A DNA stretch of 64,000 bases from Lepidodermella squamata (GCA_047495785.1 JBLDXI010000055.1:1860001-1924000); one strand, 5' to 3'; shown: positions 1 through 9,595, numbered from the stretch's first letter. Notes: a model not told the origin generated them from the letters alone. Numbers and translations: made by a program.

Positions 1-1340
1 AGAGGCGTGGTTTTCGCCAGCGTGAAGCTAAATCATCCAATTTCGACACACTTCGTAGGTCACCACTCCGCTTTTTGTCGCGCAGACGGACACACAGATG
101 ACACGGCAGGTTGCTGTAGGGATTGGATTGGAGATTTCTCTATTACTATTCGTCTAATGTTAAGCTTGCTTTCGAGTGCCTCGCGATTTTCGGCGGTATC
201 CACAAGGGCAACGTCTTCAGCGAACTGGTCACAGACCTGAGACATTAGCATGCCGTTCTTAAATTGCTTAATTTATATTTATATTATCAGTTATATTTAT
301 TTTAATTTAGTTATTATACAAAATTAATTTTTCTATTATTTTGTGCAGCGTCCTTCACGTATTTCAGTTTTCAAAATTCAAAATCCAAAATGGCGGCTTG
401 GCCGTTGCACGCGTCGGCGTCTGCGTCGGTCACCTTGCGCAAGGCAAACACAGTCCCGAATACCGAAGCGTCTCATGTCTCATGTCTTGTTCTGCGTTTT
501 AAAACTAAAAACTAAAAGCTTATGCCTTTTCGTGACTATCATTACTGTATAGTTCATACTGTGGAGCTTTTCGCGCATAGGCAGCCTCATTTTCTCTTTT
601 CTCTAGCTCAATCTACTTTCTCAAAGTTAGATGAGTAAGATCTGGTTAGAGAATGAGAGAACGAACAGGATAGTTTTCATCCTACATCAGTATCTGCGTG
701 AGGCAGAAAAGAATGGGTCTCGGATTCGAACTCGGCATAAACGTGTATAATATTCTTACACTACGTAGTCTTGTATTTACTCTTAACCCTCCGAAAGGAA
801 TTCCAGATTTGAGTTGCCTCGAATATTAGATATTTTCTTGTTTATTTATTTACTCAGTTATCAGTCACTCTTTATTCGATACGCGATTAAAGCGCGCCTG
901 TTCAGCCCTGTAAAGAGCTGTTTTTGTAGCGAATTCGGCAAAACGGCTCGTCTACATTTTGTTCCGTAATCAATTAAGGTGGAATGCGACACGTTAAAGC
1001 TGTCTGCTATACTTATTTGTGTCCCATTTGTGTCTGAATAAAGATGCTCATCCTATCAAGAGGCAGAGTGTAGTCGTCAAGTGGTGAACGTAGCTGTTGG
1101 CAAGTTCTGTGTTTGGCATGCCGCCCTGCTCATGCTTGTGCAGCCTCTCCTGACAGACCAAACATACCTCAATAAATTTGAGGATAATTGGTTAAGCGTG
1201 AATGGACAGATATATGGTCATCATCTTTCAGTTTTATCATATCTTATCAGAATTGCCGTATTTTCCTCATTTAATTTATTCACCATTTTGGGATTTTTAT
1301 AGAGGATAATTACAATTTTTATCATAATATTTCGTTGCAA

Positions 1341-1841
1341 ATGTTCCTGCCACTTTCGTTTATCAAAACGCCGGCGATAGAACCTGAAACGGCCAAACGA
1401 TGTCTTTTCGGTTCACCTGATCATGAAGCTCTGCGCGCCTCGCTTGATTCCAGGTTCGACGAACAAGTCCGGATAGCTAGCGAGCGTTGGAATTTCGATT
1501 TCAAGGCGGAAATGCCTTTGCCAGGTGGTTCCTTCAGCTGGGAGACATCGACCGGAAGAACGCCCCCTATCAGCAATTTGAGTCCGTTGCGAAACGTCGA
1601 ACACACTGAAAAACGATCTCCATTTGCCTCGCAGCCTCGTAAATCGCTATCAAAGAAAAAAGCTACCAAACGTCTTTCCTCCGAGCCGCGTTCTCATCAA
1701 ACATACATAAAAGGTTCGATTTTCAGCTTACAAGATGGCACTTTATTATATTTAATGTTTCTTCTTTCAGACTACATGCCGATGAAAAAATCTTGCCTAG
1801 CTGTGTCACCTTCTTCGTCGAAAAAGTCGTCTGTGGCATAA
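1341..1841 (+). CDS. CIP/KIP-family cyclin-dependent kinase inhibitor (p21/p27/Dacapo-like), 2 exons (intron 1714-1770)
   Basis: CDI motifs AKRCLFGSPDHEAL and ERWNFDFKAEMPLPGGSFSWE. The in-frame GT-AG intron 1714-1770 gives a C-terminal QTYIKDYMPMKK PIP-like motif when removed. First ATG at 1341. Confidence 0.85.
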   Translation: MFLPLSFIKTPAIEPETAKRCLFGSPDHEALRASLDSRFDEQVRIASERWNFDFKAEMPLPGGSFSWETSTGRTPPISNLSPLRNVEHTEKRSPFASQPRKSLSKKKATKRLSSEPRSHQTYIKGSIFSLQDGTLLYLMFLLSDYMPMKKSCLAVSPSSSKKSSVA

Positions 1842-2526: not shown

Positions 2527-5500
2527 TTAGAGCAGGATAAAACTAGCATTAGCGGCGTCAGATGTTTGTGAAAGCAAAAAATTTCGCATCAAGGTTTTCA
2601 AGTCCTTTCGCTCGTCCATGTTATCGACAAGACGCACTCGTTTCGCATCGAGAAAATTCCAGTCGAACACTATCCATTTCACGGAACACAACGACAAGCT
2701 GCGAAAAATAATAAGTAATGTCGAATAGAGATAGATAATAGATGGCATTAACGTCTTTACCTGCCAGCCTGAATAAGCTGATGAATGCGAAGTGGTGTGC
2801 CGATACCGTCAAACGGGGCGACTTTGACAGTGGGGCGACATTGACATGGGTTTTTGCGATCGACTTTAACCGCGATGATGTGGGACATGAAAGCAAAATT
2901 TAGGTATCAATATGGGTATATTTGGAAAGCTGAGAAAAAGTTGAACAAAATGGAGGGGTGTAGCGAACGCAATAAAATTTAGGTTGATTGGAAAATCAGG
3001 TAGAAGGTGGCCAAAGTCACCCGCACACACGTATGATGCTTTTGGGGCGACTTTGCCCTAGTTTGATGAAAAATCAAAAAACCACGAAAATAAAGGAAAA
3101 CTGCAACAGTTTTGTTGCAAAAATAAAGTTAAAATGCGATAAAATACTACAAAAATATAAAATAATGATAATATTGATTAATAAAAATACAACTGATTTG
3201 TTTTGACACTTATTGTTTACCGGGAAATATATCACGTGCTTCTGTTCAGGTTCAGGGAACGAGAACGGGGATCTAGAAAATAACTAGAACGTTTTTGTTT
3301 CCATTCATCAGAAAATCAAGTCAATTTTGTGGACCGTGGACCCTCCAAATTATTTGTAACATCCATCATTCATCCTTCATCATTCATCATTCATCGACTC
3401 ATGGATATTTACTAAATGCAATACCTGACTTTTCAACTAAATGTTGGTTGCTAACATTATGCTTTTTTCCTCCTAGACTTCTTTAAAAGGTTTCTTATTC
3501 TCTTTATCAATTATATTATCTCGCAATGGTTCGCAATTATGAGCGCGAAGCAGGCAGCCGCCAGTACCGGGACTACTCTCCTTCAACGTTGCGTGAGGCG
3601 GTTTCAGATGTTCGACAGGGTGCTAAGTCTGTAAGGCAATCTAGTCGCGACTCAGATATCTGCCGGGGGACCGTTAAGAACAAGGCGAGTAATTTACACA
3701 TGAAAAAAGCTGGGGGCCAGCGGGCGTTAAGTGAAACTCAGGAAAACATTTGCTGTGATTATTTAGTCAAGTTTGCGAACCATGGGTTCCCCCTGGATGA
3801 GCTAAGGGTTAGGAGTTTGGTTCGTTCTTATTTGATAGAGCGTGGCATCACCGTTAAGTGTTTTCGTGAGGGGAATATGCCTGGGAGAGACTGGTACTAC
3901 TCGTTCATTAAGCGTAATCGAGATCGCGTTAGGCAGAAAATAGGGACTAATTTGAACGTTAAAAGGGCTTACAGCCGAAATGGTGCTAAAAGCGAAGGCG
4001 GACGCAGAAGCTGCAAGACTAGCTGTTAAAGAAGCTGCGAAGTCGAAAGCAAAGTCTAAAGCTAAGCTGCGGAAAACTATCATCATCAACCCAGCTTTAG
4101 ATTCACGCGGTGCCTTTGATTGTAAGCTTAATACTTTACAATTGTTAAAATTTTGACGATTTTTTTTCCGTAGACTTCAACGATGTCATGGACGAAAGTT
4201 TCCCGGTCGATTTTATTGATGCACGGTCTGATTTGATTGAGAAACAAGCCGCCGAAGCTCAAGCTATCGCTGAGAAACAAGCCGCCGAAGCTCAAGCTAT
4301 CGCTGAGAAACAAGCCGCCCGAGCTGAAGCTATCGCTCAGGAAAAACTCGCTCTCGAATCTCGTTTGCACAAAGTCCAGTTGTGGTGCAAAGATGTAAGC
4401 GGCCGCGGTGATTGTTTCTATGAGTCTTTATGTGACCAAATCCATGGTTTCGCTCCTCCCGCCTTAATTAAGCAACTCCGAGTTGATACTGCGGCCTTTT
4501 TGTCGGCAAACATTGAGGCATTTTCTGCATTCGTAAACCTCAAGCCAAATGGCGAAGATACCCAGGCGATGGCGGACGTTGAAGAGCCCATTGACGTTCA
4601 AGGTAAGCTTTTCTTCGGTGTGATTATAGATTTTAATTAATGCTGTTTAGTTGCTGCTCAGCGAGAAGAAGGAATTTGGGCGGATGAAAAGAGTCTCATA
4701 GCCGCCGCCCGTGCTCACAACGTCATCATATATGTGCACTGCTCAAACTACTCAAGATGCTACGAGCCTAGTATTATCAACCATGAAACTTTAACTGCTC
4801 ATGTTGCTTATTATACCACTCACTACATGTCGATTAGGGACATTTTTCATAAATCTAACGAGTATAGGAAACTAAATTTAAGTGTTGACGGAAATGTCTT
4901 ATCACGCACATAGACTAGACTTATATATCTATTTTTGTACCTAAGTAACTGTGATAGTTATAGCATGCTTCTATACGTTAGCTGAAATTGAGATGATGTC
5001 GGTATTATCCCGTGATAATGATGCTCTACCTTGAAATACATCGGTTCTAAAAATCACTAAAGTCTTTCGATTTCAGCTTCAATTTTTATGATTATTCTAC
5101 AAAATAAAATGATATTTGTTTCATTTTGCGTTGACTTTCTCCTTTTTTCGCGATTAAAACAAAACGACGTAACCCGATAAAATGCCGGCGGAATAGCGGA
5201 AAGTTGTCGAAGTAAAATTGGTCATTTTTATGAATAATGCTGTTCCCGAATCTACACAATCATTCAAGAAAACACACTGTAATAAACTTAAGGTAGACTA
5301 GCGCCGTAGTTATAATAAATAATTTCAAATTTTTAGGCACAATTCATTTCAAAATTTTAATAAACGTCAAGGTCATTTGGTTGTTTTTCTGTCAGGAGAT
5401 CATGGTAAAGCCGCCCCCATCGAGCTGTGTCAAAGTCGCCCCAGCGTCAAAGTCGCCCCGTTTGACGGTACCAATATGTACGATGTTTTTCTTTAAGAAT

Positions 5501-6076
5501 TCTTTCTGATGCTCAATCTGTAACACGAAATGCTGAATGCCACTGGTATGGAAAGTTAAAACAAACTTTCATGTGCCGGGAGAAAAGTTTGGCGACCTTG
5601 CAGTTTTTCCCTTTAAAAGGTGTCAACAAACTAAAGATGATAGGGCCAAATGTTATCGAGTCGGTTCAAAAAACGTTGCACAGGAAAGCTACCGAATTAA
5701 ATTGCAGCAACGAATTGCAGAACTGCAAACAACAAGCATGAGTGGTTCCCCCTTATGTTTAGCATCGGCTAACGAAGCTTGCCAATCCGGAAGACAAGCT
5801 TTCAGGTACACTGACGGATCGGCTGACTCCCGAGCACTTGAAGGCGGCTGAATGAACCGTTCACCTGTTAAATGGTCGCTGATACTCATTGTCATATTCA
5901 CATGGAAATGATTTACGAGGAACAATTAGCTCAGATAATTCCAAGCTGGTCAAGTCGTCCTTGAACAGGTTATTGATCGAATCATTTAGATGCAGCAGAC
6001 TGTGCTGAATTTCATGCTGCCTGCTTTTCGGTTTGCTAGATTTGCTCTTGGTGCTGACATCAAGTATAGGTTCCAT
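2527..6076 (-). CDS. CMSS1: CMS1/CMSS1 ribosome-biogenesis protein, 5 exons, exon 4 interrupted by a DNA transposon
   Basis: Manual splice 6076-5917, 5864-5693, 5630-5567, 5517-(insertion)-2761, 2698-2527 gives ...GEPLMLVVCSSAIRCCNLIR..CKVAKLFSRHMKIEHQKEFL..VHIG|IGTPLRI..WIVFDWNFLDAKRVRLVD, matching CMS1-family motifs. Confidence 0.85.
3526..3970 (+). pseudogene. pogo/Tigger-type transposase N-terminus (HTH_psq + CENP-B-type HTH); DDE domain absent
   Basis: MVRNYER..YSPSTLREAVSDVRQGAKSVRQSSRDSDICRGTVKNK (psq-like HTH), then GGQRALSETQE..ANHGFPL..PGRDWYYSFIKRN (CENP-B-like HTH), ending ...NVKRA. No DDE region follows. Confidence 0.8.
3980..4913 (+). CDS. Transposon-borne coiled-coil + OTU cysteine protease domain (exons 3980-4121, 4174-4602, 4651-4913); may be the C-terminal part of the original transposase
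   Basis: Two GT-AG introns (4122-4173, 4603-4650) splice in frame. Motifs: DVSGRGDCFYESL (Cys box), LRVDTAAFL, GIWADEKSLIAAARAHNVIIYV and HVAYYTTHYMSI (His box). The start codon is uncertain. Confidence 0.78.
4239..4337 (+). repeat. 33-bp coding tandem repeat x3 (EKQAAEAQAIA)
   Basis: GAGAAACAAGCCGCCGAAGCTCAAGCTATCGCT twice exactly, plus one slightly diverged copy. Confidence 0.95.
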
Positions 6077-6119
6077 AATAAGGCAAGCTATAAAATAAGT
6101 GTCGTTTTACTTTCCTGTT

Positions 6120-7707
6120 CTACCACATAAATCTTTGAACGTTCGACGGGTCGTGCGGCCACACAAAAGGCTTGAACAAGAAAAGATATAGCGTAACCAC
6201 GTTAAGAGAAAGATAAATTATAAATTCCAACGCGATACGCCAAGTTTCCGAATTATTCTTCGCGATAGTCAAACGATAAAAAAGCAAAGGGATTATGAAA
6301 TACCGGAATTCTAACAGAGCTTGTGGGATGAGATTAGCCGCCGTTCCCAGAAAAAACGCAACGGTCAAAAAAGAATCCTTTGAAGAATCATGGAATGACG
6401 ACACTAGCTGGTAGATCGCGGCGACGTAAATCGGAACAAGAGCGTATTTGACAAACCAGAAAGGGCGAACGATGCGCATCCATAAATAGAATGTGTAATG
6501 CCGATTATCCGATATCAAATAAAGATGCTCATATGTGAAGTAGCGAACAGATAGCATACAAATTAAGATGCTAATGCAAAAAATAATACGACGCATCCAA
6601 GAACCAAACATCATGTCAAGAGTTTTCTTCAAATTTTCTGTGGAGATATTATAAGAAGCAGCGAAAAATGCCGTGAAAGCTGAAAAATAGAAAAATTGCG
6701 GTACGTTGAAGACTGCAGTGTGAGCATTCCGATCGCCCAGCGCAACTCCTCCGTTCCAAACGACGAAAGTACAGAACGACATGCAGACGATCAGATACGG
6801 CCAGATACTCTGCAAGGAAAGTTTAAGTAGATGCCACATTGTAACAACAGGTCGCGAGTTCGGCGCTACAAGCAGAAGATAAAGCACGCCGAAAGTATCC
6901 CGAGATTGGATTTCTGAAAGATCGAGTCGCTTGGTAGCATGGAACTTCACAACGCTCGAAACTTCAACTGCCATGAGGAAGACTACCCAAATAATGTTGG
7001 TTTGCCGAAAGGTTAGAGACCATGCTGAACCAATGCAACGCATCGAAACCACAGATTACTTGGTAACCAAAAAACTTACCCGAACAGAAAGCTGACAGTT
7101 TTAAGTTTCCATTCAGACATAAATAGTATGCGAGAAGAACAAAGAAAGCCCCTCCAGGGTCCGTGTAATATAGGAATGTGAAGAAATATAACACGGGAAA
7201 TAAACTCAACGTGATTGCTTGCAGCATACTTGACGTCCTGTTTAGCTGAAATATGATGTCAGGAGCAACATTTCAATTGCATGCTAGTAGCAAACCTCAT
7301 TATATCCACTGAGCAGTCGAAGAATTTTGTACAAGATGACGACGATCATCATGTGAAAAAATAAATTCGACAAACGAATAGGCAGCACTTCGTCGCATGC
7401 GCTCCTCAAGTCCAAAGCAGGGGTTATTAACGTAAGCGGCCAGAGCAATGCTATTGTGGAGACATATAGACCAGGAGGAGTAGTAATTTTTGGATCCCAC
7501 TTGAATTTGAAACAATAGGATATTCATAACAGGGATTAACATTGTCGGATCACTAACCTCAAAATTATGAGAGCAGTAGTTTTGCAGTTGAGGAATGTGA
7601 AAAATTTCGTCCATATAAGGTTCTTCCTGAATGCTGCTGACGTAATAGCTTAGGATAATACCGGCTGCCGATAGTGCCACTGTAGCGAAGACACCAAGGA
7701 CGAGCAT
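6120..7707 (-). CDS. ALG10: Alpha-1,2-glucosyltransferase ALG10 (DIE2 family), multi-exon
   Basis: EPYMDEIFHIPQ, WDPKITTPPGLY, FPVLYFFTFLYYTD, FRQTNIIW, NGGVALGDR, DNRHYTFYLW, LLEFRYFIIP and C-terminal RFMW*. Confidence 0.95.
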
Positions 7708-7849: not shown

Positions 7850-8520
7850 TAGCCAAAAACACTACATAGATTTGGCAGAAAATAGCCAACTCCGTGGTAA
7901 ATAATGAGGCTTCCGAAAGCACGACTCAACGTCAACGTGCCTACTAGCAATTGCCGAATATTGGCTCGGCGCGTTGAAAGACGGCAAATTTGTCGCAGCA
8001 GTCTCTCTCGACCTCAGCAAAGCTTTCGACGCCTTACACCCTGATGGCATCGCCGCATCTTTGAAAGCAGCTGGGTTTGACGAAAAAGCTATTGAACTGA
8101 TCGATTTTTACTAACACGCCGCCAACAAATCGTAATAATTGGTAATTGTCCATCTGAAAGACTGCCTGTGAATGTAGGCGTACCTCAGCGCAGTGTCCTC
8201 GGACCATTGCTATTCTCTCTATATGTAAATGACCTTTCCTCGATCTGTGATGGCGATAATCTAAGAACTATCCAATTTACTGATGATACAACAATTTATG
8301 CATTTGGATCTTCAGCTGTGGAGGCCCGAAATCTACTACAAGGTGGGCTAGACAATTTCTGCTCATGCTTTAGCAACAACTCACTTAAATTAAACCCAGT
8401 TCATGGTCTCTTCCCCTTGTCACCCAGTCCATATTCCCTCCATCAGCCTGCAAATCGCTAACACAACACTGACTGCTGTCTCTTCAATCGAATTACTAGG
8501 ATTCATTTTGGACCATAGGC
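7850..8520 (+). mobile_element. Decayed non-LTR retrotransposon (CR1/L2-like) reverse transcriptase fragment
   Basis: GFRKHDST, AVSLDLSKAFD, GVPQRSVLGPLLFSLYVNDL and QFTDDTT RT motifs, with stops and frameshifts. Boundaries are approximate. Confidence 0.88.
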
Positions 8521-9595
8521 TCATCGTGAGGGCGTAGGTGCCAGATCGAAGGTTGTTTTTCACTTTCCTCCGCATTGCTAACCAGAATCGCCTACCCCTT
8601 CAAGCGTTGCATGCTGAGAGGCAGGCACGCACTTCGTCTTCTGAAACCGGTCCAACCAGCATACCTTCTGTGGGTGCTGTCTCGACTGTAAGCAGAGGTT
8701 CCTCCTTGCTGCAACTTTACCACCGCCAAAAACTGTCCGTGTTCGATGTGTAGTACCGCGGCGGGCAGTAGAGTCGTCAGTGTCGTTTCGCACATTGCTC
8801 GCCAGTTTCTCTTAGGTCTATGCTTTCCTGATGACGATTTTTCAAGTGGGAAGCGAATAAGTGGGGATTTTATTGCTATAATTCACTGAATGACTCTAGA
8901 TACCATTTTTTGCTGCAGAAAATGCGTTTATTGTTGAACGTTTCCAAACATTATAGAACAAGTCGTTCGCCGAAACCAAACTCAAAAATATCTTCTCTCC
9001 ACTCTTGAGGGTACCCGCATGCTGCGCACACAATTTTATAAATTTCCCGCGCTATTTTCAGAGGTTTGCATTTTTGCTGTATACAACCCATTCTTGCTTG
9101 GCTTATACTTACATAAATATTAAGGTGAACAATTTGAGCCGCGAAATAGTATCAAGAGGGCAGATTTTTTTTCTTCATGACTAACCTTCTGTGCTTTTGC
9201 AGTTTTCAAGGGGGCAAATTTTGTCTACTGGCTTTTTGTTCTTTCTAGCATTGTCCGAGTGGCGTTGGGTGTTGTGCTAAGCCTAATACTCGGGCTCAGA
9301 AACCTGTAAATTCTTAATTGAATAGGTTTCCACTACTTGCAGCTTGGAGCATTTTCAGACCACTTTGATCTTTGATCTGTCAACTGTCGCCGATCGCCGA
9401 TCGCCGAACTCTAAGGCCGTGTCTCTGGGTTATTACACAAGCCTGTTCACTTCTAACCAAGCACCTTAACTCCAGCTTATTACCAATTATATTTTCAGGG
9501 GTCAGGGATAAGTATAACGTACTGTACTGCCCGATGTCCGATTTAAATATGGATTTTCTTGCCGACAATTTCCTGATGAGATTACTTGTTTTTAG

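Follow-up and report, generated by a model that had tools for sequence, protein, structure and literature searches.

The locus described here lies in a window of 64,000 nucleotides of Lepidodermella squamata DNA (GCA_047495785.1, JBLDXI010000055.1:1860001-1924000; all positions are counted from the first letter of this window, at its full length) and consists of CMSS1, a five-exon gene on the minus strand, and a non-autonomous DNA transposon of the pogo type that interrupts its fourth exon. The transposon occupies 2,663 bp (2806-5468, plus strand) and is delimited by terminal inverted repeats (TIRs) and by a duplication of the dinucleotide TA. By examining the two junctions, the exon structure and family membership of the gene, the protein content of the element, and its kin in the 121-Mb assembly, we arrive at a reading that we hold to be likely: the locus carries a germline pogo-type insertion in the sole CMSS1 gene, mobilised in trans, which forms a young and probably heterozygous or strain-specific null allele.

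Boundaries of the element

One copy of the TA duplication lies on the left (2804-2805) and the other on the right (5469-5470), the latter giving the T of the CMSS1 codon GGT and the A of the codon ATC. On the plus strand the left junction reads ...gtgtgccga-TA-CCGTCAAACGGGGCGACTTTGAC... (2804-2806) and the right junction ...GTCAAAGTCGCCCCGTTTGACGG-TA-ccaatatg (5468-5470). A repeat search placed the left TIR at 2806-2868 (plus) and the right TIR at 5406-5468 (minus): the inverted arms 2804-2868 and 5406-5470 are 65 nt long with 80% identity, the TIRs proper measure 63 nt, and the outermost 23 nt of the element match perfectly between both ends. The same search found repeated GGGGCGAC(T/A)TTGAC motifs in the left TIR, which are probably transposase-binding sites. 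With at most one mismatch allowed, the end pattern TACCGTCARAYGGGGYGAC occurs 151 times in the assembly and a reversed-pattern control not once; it is therefore a transposon end and no chance repeat. A 4-bp duplication, TACC, was considered and rejected, as TA yields symmetric TIRs and suits the other copies of the family: TA stands on both sides in 14 of the 17 family copies listed, while L013, L023 and L026 are without it as listed. The element thus shows both the 2-bp TA duplication and the terminal inverted repeats of a Tc1/mariner-pogo transposon, and its open reading frames (ORFs), on the plus strand, are antisense to CMSS1.

Structure of the interrupted gene

Read directly from the sequence, the five exons of CMSS1 are free of stops and all of their boundaries are GT-AG, the introns measuring 52, 62, 49 and 62 nt in order; the predicted protein has ~219 aa, from a coding sequence of ~660 nt. 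Exon 1 (5917-6076, minus strand, as are all the exons) starts with an ATG at 6076 and spans 53 codons and one further nucleotide; the 52-nt intron after it reads GTAAAT...AACAG, and what looked like a frameshift in this exon is that intron. Exons 2 (5693-5864) and 3 (5567-5630, LLTPFKGKNCKVAKLFSRHMK) are followed by exon 4, which is in two halves: the upstream half (5469-5517) encodes IEHQKEFLKKNIVHIG plus an A, and the downstream half (2761-2803) consists of TC, GTPLRIHQLIQAG and AG, with its donor GT at 2760-2759. Exon 5 (2527-2698) reads LSLCSVKWIVFDWNF...ASFILL and closes with a TAA stop.

Across the insertion site the minus strand reads CAT ATT GGT A / element / TA TC GGC ACA CCA. An in silico deletion of the element together with one TA, which served only to read the frame of the interrupted exon 4, gives a 92-nt exon reading IEHQKEFLKKNIVHIGIGTPLRIHQLIQAG. 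The expected empty-site DNA is accordingly ...GTGTGCCGATACCAATATG... and the junction of a clean, uninterrupted message would be ...GGTATCGGC.... The preliminary description of this DNA had stated that such a removal restores the residues HIGIGTP and that the remaining exons are open with GT-AG boundaries, and both statements agree with what we read here.

Family identity of CMSS1 and position of the insertion

The gene was searched exon by exon, and the score of a single exon is to be read against a curated cut-off of 35 bits for the CMS1 family model PF14617: exon 2 reaches 15.7 bits (model positions 104-142, E 0.01) and exon 5 reaches 13.1 bits (positions 192-231, E 0.06), both below the cut-off and in the expected order. 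An exhaustive search of exon 2 against 1.84 billion representatives returned one true relative, P0003, a protein of 118 aa from ENA that scores 63.9 bits on PF14617 and is clearly a member of the CMS1 family; two other candidates from that search, P0001 and P0002, were discarded as repeat-protein artefacts. P0003 is colinear with the pieces of CMSS1 at 41-75% identity: exon 2 aligns with its residues 4-60 (41% identity), exon 3 with residues 59-80 (68%), the upstream half of exon 4 with residues 79-95 (KIEQQKESLKKRGFHVG against QIEHQKEFLKKNIVHIG), and the downstream half with residues 97-110 (GTPSRIYQLIQEQR against GTPLRIHQLIQAGR). Only I96 is left over between these two stretches, and its counterpart is the split codon A/TC that straddles the TA, so that the flanks are adjacent with no residue gained or lost; the motif is HVG-I-GTP in P0003 and HIG-(element)-I-GTP in the window. 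Together with the TIRs and the TA duplication, this alignment, contiguous to the codon on one CMS1-family protein, bears out the central claim of the preliminary description, that a transposon sits inside a conserved coding exon of CMSS1, and the refuting condition named there, flanks that fail to align in this way, does not hold.

The insertion point is one codon ahead of the GTPxR motif. In a search of PDB sequences P0003 aligns to the RecA1 domain of DDX39 through motif Ib (HVVVGTPGR), so that the insertion precedes the counterpart of this helicase motif by one codon. Cms1 has been described as a single RecA-like helicase fold without the Walker A and DEAD (ATPase) motifs (PMC9715914). The window has GIGTPLRI, and VFDWNF in the place of the DEAD-box sequence VLDEAD; as far as motifs can tell, the predicted CMSS1 protein agrees with a single RecA-like fold lacking Walker A or DEAD. 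Among PDB sequences the CMSS1 exon pieces themselves returned noise, and P0003 returned DEAD-box helicases and no Cms1 entry. Word searches with P0003 and P0004 gave no further relatives and no CMSS1 protein of 65-222 aa from the same species, such as would have revealed a spliced or uninterrupted product, and metagenome contigs gave no match to an exact flank probe or to a scan with back-translated P0003.

CMSS1 is a single-copy gene in the 121-Mb assembly. Both flanks of the insertion in exon 4 are unique, with no second DNA copy of either in the assembly, which likewise holds no empty-site haplotig and no CMSS1 paralogue. The exon 5 protein matches only itself genome-wide, and P0003 matches the CMSS1 locus and, via its residues 78-111 (the segment with the GTP motif), two open frames of 603 aa that are taken to be helicases. 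A PF14617 match on contig C29 was checked as a possible paralogue and rejected as a DEAD-box helicase.

Protein content of the element

The first exon of the element (3526-3969, plus strand, as are the others) encodes an N-terminal DNA-binding head of the transposase type (psq/CENP-B-like helix-turn-helix region), which shares 37% identity across 145 aa (E 1e-21) with an ORF of 633 aa on contig 15 in which a DDE_1 domain is present (64 bits); the Pfam helix-turn-helix models gave no match on this piece. No DDE domain was found anywhere in the element at E values up to 10, and no Pfam match to one (DDE_1 is PF03184), so that the element is a non-autonomous derivative and not an autonomous pogo transposon. 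Transposase homology, reading frame and DNA similarity to other genomic fragments all end at 3969/3971, and 3969-3971 looks like the deletion or recombination junction by which the DDE domain was removed.

Beyond this point the sequence suggests a Lys/Ala-rich linker exon (3980-4121, donor GT at 4122) in a frame different from that of the first exon, to which it can be joined only by a frameshift or by removal of an intron of 49 nt (3983-4031). The next exon (4174-4602) contains an OTU Cys box (GRGDCFYESLCDQ) and, right before it, a coiled-coil-like linker made of three tandem units of 33 bp (4238-4351) that encode EKQAAEAQAIA repeats. The last exon (4651-4913) holds a second OTU-like half (WADE..., HVAYY..HYMSI) and ends in a TAG stop. 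The OTU motifs GDCFYESL and HVAYY..HYMS are visible by inspection, and the two pieces match OTUD3 (4bou_A) colinearly at residues 14-65 and 80-145; since these matches are weak (E 0.39 and 0.32) and neither piece gave a Pfam match, we call the domain OTU-like only.

Paralogues of this domain, 42-45% identical to the last exon of the element, adjoin DDE_1 matches elsewhere in the genome, with DDE_1 directly upstream. On contig 59 a decayed relative on the minus strand (L061:5034-7455; G000 C59:367000-369500) has a 233-aa ORF that unites the end of DDE_1, a coiled coil and an OTU Cys box in one reading frame; in it the catalytic Cys is changed to Arg (GDRFYEAL), and a further repeat-rich insert separates the OTU halves. 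This arrangement, together with the upstream position of DDE_1 at the paralogues, points to an ancestral layout of head, DDE and OTU, of which the middle was lost here. A protein made of such a head and an OTU-like domain could act in trans as a regulator of its own transposon family.

The transposon family and its larger relatives

At full length the element is unique in the assembly, its kin being fragments of 77-83% identity that include a degraded copy on contig 13 with the same right end. Its 63-nt ends are nevertheless common to ~70 miniature inverted-repeat transposable elements (MITEs) of ~420-620 bp, mostly ~620 bp. MITEs at separate loci are 96.5-99.4% identical, which indicates that the family was mobile recently. 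Two 620-bp MITEs on a very small contig (L023 and L024; G000 C139:1676-2299 and 4697-5320) show 100% identity, face in opposite directions and are separated by 2.4 kb; a very recent event or a palindrome created in assembly would account for them.

Two pogo-type elements of ~4.4 kb, on contig 15 (L044:2165-6584) and contig 3 (L045:2214-6698), are apparently intact and contain head-DDE ORFs of 622-633 aa that end in ...VPADG and ...VPSNG, as though an OTU exon were spliced on behind them. Both have TA-flanked TIRs of the same design, beginning TA/CCGTAAATTGGGGC... and TA/CCGTCACTTGGGGC..., each with a subterminal repeat motif of its own that is unlike the element's, and their heads are 33-37% identical to that of the element. 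The closest head, at 55% identity, is a remnant with stops, and within the search, in which the flanks of most DDE_1 loci were not covered, nothing emerged in which this head and a DDE domain are paired. The preliminary description had proposed that a recent insertion of a DDE-less copy would imply an active autonomous partner elsewhere in the genome. A recently mobile family and intact pogo-OTU relatives with similar outermost ends bear this proposal out in part; the partner itself did not emerge within the scope just given, the best head with a DDE domain being 37% identical to that of the element.

Neighbouring genes

Upstream of CMSS1 and on the same strand lies the last exon of ALG10 (DIE2/ALG10; 6120-7052, PF04922, E 2e-67), whose TAG stop (6123-6121; the ORF listing ends at 6120) precedes the CMSS1 ATG at 6076 by ~45 nt. 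An acceptor-like sequence, ttattttatag, stands directly upstream of that ATG (window 6077-6123). The spacing of the two genes is operon-like and the junction of a trans-splice type, with CMSS1 as the putative downstream gene of the pair. Convergent with CMSS1 is an ORF of 168 aa (1335-1841, plus strand) whose N-terminal part, LFGSPDHEALRASLDSRFDEQ...WNFDF, resembles by eye a CDK-inhibitor (p21/p27-type) domain. Beside ALG10, at 7974-8540 (plus strand), ORFs whose motifs (...SLDLSKAFD..., ...FTDDTTIYA...) by eye look like those of reverse transcriptases point to a piece of a non-LTR (long terminal repeat) retrotransposon.

Effect of the insertion on CMSS1

As assembled, the frame of exon 4 runs through ...NIVHIG into 25 codons of the element and then meets a stop, and the predicted interrupted product is without the GTPxR motif, exon 5 and the last ~70 residues. 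Because an exon junction follows downstream of this premature stop, the CMSS1 message would probably be degraded and the allele is most likely null. In the opposite half, the frame of downstream exon 4 (2757-2888, minus strand) extends 29 codons into the element without a stop and begins with an ATG at 2888; a transcript starting within the TIR could encode a C-terminal fragment of CMSS1.

The element cut into a TA inside the codons GGT-ATC of H-I-G-I-G-T-P and duplicated it. The insertion appears to be young, since the TA duplication is perfect and the five exons and four introns are undamaged, and it must have been mobilised in trans, since this copy combines its DNA-binding head with an OTU-like tail and is devoid of a DDE domain. 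Its tolerance may have either or both of two causes: the allele may be heterozygous or strain-specific, with the inserted haplotype represented in the primary assembly, or the loss of CMS1 may be mild, as the yeast gene is nonessential (PMC9715914). In a clonal culture, should it be one, an allele in the heterozygous state could be maintained without limit of time.

Several points weigh against this reading or limit it. An intact coding sequence of ~660 nt limits the age of the insertion only loosely. There is no near-identical sister copy of the element, the nearest sequences being the 77-83% fragments, so that the insertion cannot be dated by copy divergence; nor was a cognate autonomous partner found in a search that left the flanks of most DDE_1 loci outside.

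Alternative explanations

A first alternative is that the gene still works, at least in part, because the CMSS1 pre-mRNA loses the element as a cryptic intron. Such rescue has precedents: through cryptic sites at their ends, the elements Tc1 of C. elegans and Ds/dSpm of maize are removed from exons by splicing. A suitable pair of sites also exists here, as an enumeration of the sequence revealed: a hypothetical intron of 2,650 nt (2822-5471, minus strand), with its donor at ATTG/GTACCG (GT 5471-5470) and its acceptor at CTGTCAAAG/TC (AG 2823-2822), would leave 15 extra nucleotides in frame and free of stops (junction ...CATATTG/TCGCCCC...), add the residues VAPFD and keep the motif, as HI-VAPFD-GIGTP, in a host gene that is otherwise intact. 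A G of the flank, the T of the TA and the end of the element together would form this donor, and the acceptor, GTCAAAG/TC, would fall within the other TIR. Among 35 GT/AG pairs near the ends, however, six are in frame and stop-free, so that one such pair is unremarkable, and only one of them keeps the motif. The donor GTACCG and an acceptor without a T-tract are unlike the 6-7 real sites nearby (GTAAAT/GTAAAG; TTTCGCAG/TCTTTAG), and 2,650 nt is ~45 times the local norm of 49-62 nt. The GT and AG inside the TIRs alone would add 20 nt, so that the family is without a built-in, in-frame design. The idea of a family habit of landing in exons likewise found no support, as 13 MITE copies gave no sign of location in coding exons and their sites no spanning ORF above background. 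The five extra residues, finally, would adjoin the most conserved motif of the protein. Splicing of this kind is on balance unlikely, and a shade less likely is its fuller form, in which a pogo-OTU derivative spliced out at G/GTACCG and CAAAG/TC would leave the sole CMSS1 functional and represent an intron in the making. Were it true, a pogo-type element that targets TA would be giving rise to an intron, in a phylum of which hardly any genomes are on record.

A second alternative, that CMSS1 is an old and fixed pseudogene in which the insertion is one lesion of a gene being lost, also seems improbable. It draws on the facts that the only CMSS1 locus is the interrupted one, that yeast CMS1 is dispensable, and that the element is without a close sister copy. 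Against it stand five exons without a stop or frameshift, eight canonical splice sites, an intact ATG and stop and a perfect TA duplication, as well as a relative that retains an intact CMS1 protein.

Restoration of the gene by somatic excision of the DNA, whether mediated by transposase or through programmed elimination, appears to us very improbable. Some organisms, the ciliates among them, excise TA-bounded elements precisely, and related intact pogo-OTU transposases are present in this genome. Excision of Tc1/pogo elements, however, normally leaves footprints and does not restore the reading frame, and the cognate transposase was not found among the DDE_1 loci, the flanks of most of which were not covered; the standard code and the animal-type genes, moreover, show that this is no ciliate germline nucleus. 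An artefact of assembly or of reads (a chimeric join), or an event confined to somatic cells, is just as hard to credit as the source of the insertion: nothing was found in its favour, and against it stand precise junctions, complete TIRs on both sides, flanks that rejoin to the codon and a family-typical TA duplication of 2 bp. A misjoin would make no target-site duplication.

Significance

We thus return to a young germline insertion, moved in trans, as the likely origin of the locus. The insertion is an ordinary transposon disruption of a dispensable-type gene, and the unusual part is the protein content of the element: a transposase DNA-binding head that is fused with an OTU-like protease while the catalytic DDE domain is absent makes a more unusual object than the insertion itself. 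The locus nonetheless offers a clean natural case of a cut-and-paste transposon interrupting a ribosome-assembly gene that is conserved and present in one copy. Homozygous animals would mean that a metazoan can do without CMSS1; splicing of the element from the message would mean that the gain of an intron has been caught in the act; and if the insertion is heterozygous in a clonal lineage, the allele would mark the divergence of haplotypes.

Comparison with known systems

The host gene resembles CMS1 of yeast and CMSS1 of human, a 90S pre-ribosome factor, in that exons 2 and 5 match PF14617 in order (the middle exons being placed via P0003), in its GIGTPxRI sequence aligned with helicase motif Ib, and in its housekeeping gene context; it differs in that the predicted protein, at ~219 aa, is shorter and very divergent, and in that the gene is interrupted. 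With introner elements the locus shares a TIR element in an exon, a GT derived in part from the target or its duplication, and an AG within the end of the element. It departs from them in having one motif-keeping pair, at chance level, weak sites, no family-wide design and, among the 13 MITE sites, no exonic sister insertions.

Exon alleles of Tc1/mariner-pogo elements, such as those of Tc1 in C. elegans, are similar in their TA target, their TIRs, the precise interruption of an exon and the possibility of rescue through cryptic splicing. The present case is by contrast a natural allele in the reference assembly of a poorly sampled animal and not one of a mutator strain, and its element has no transposase catalytic domain. 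From the ~70 MITEs that share its 63-nt ends, the element is set apart by its length of 2.66 kb, its single copy and its retained head and OTU-like ORFs. The element also parallels pogo/Tigger transposons (DDE_1, CENP-B/psq helix-turn-helix), with which it has in common a head that is 37% identical to DDE_1-bearing ORFs of this genome, the TA duplication, and ends (TA/CCGTCA...GGGGC) resembling those of the intact 4.4-kb relatives. Its subterminal repeat, GGGGCGACTTTGAC, is unlike that of these relatives, and its DDE domain is deleted, homology being lost past 3969; what follows the head is a coiled-coil repeat and then an OTU-like protease domain.

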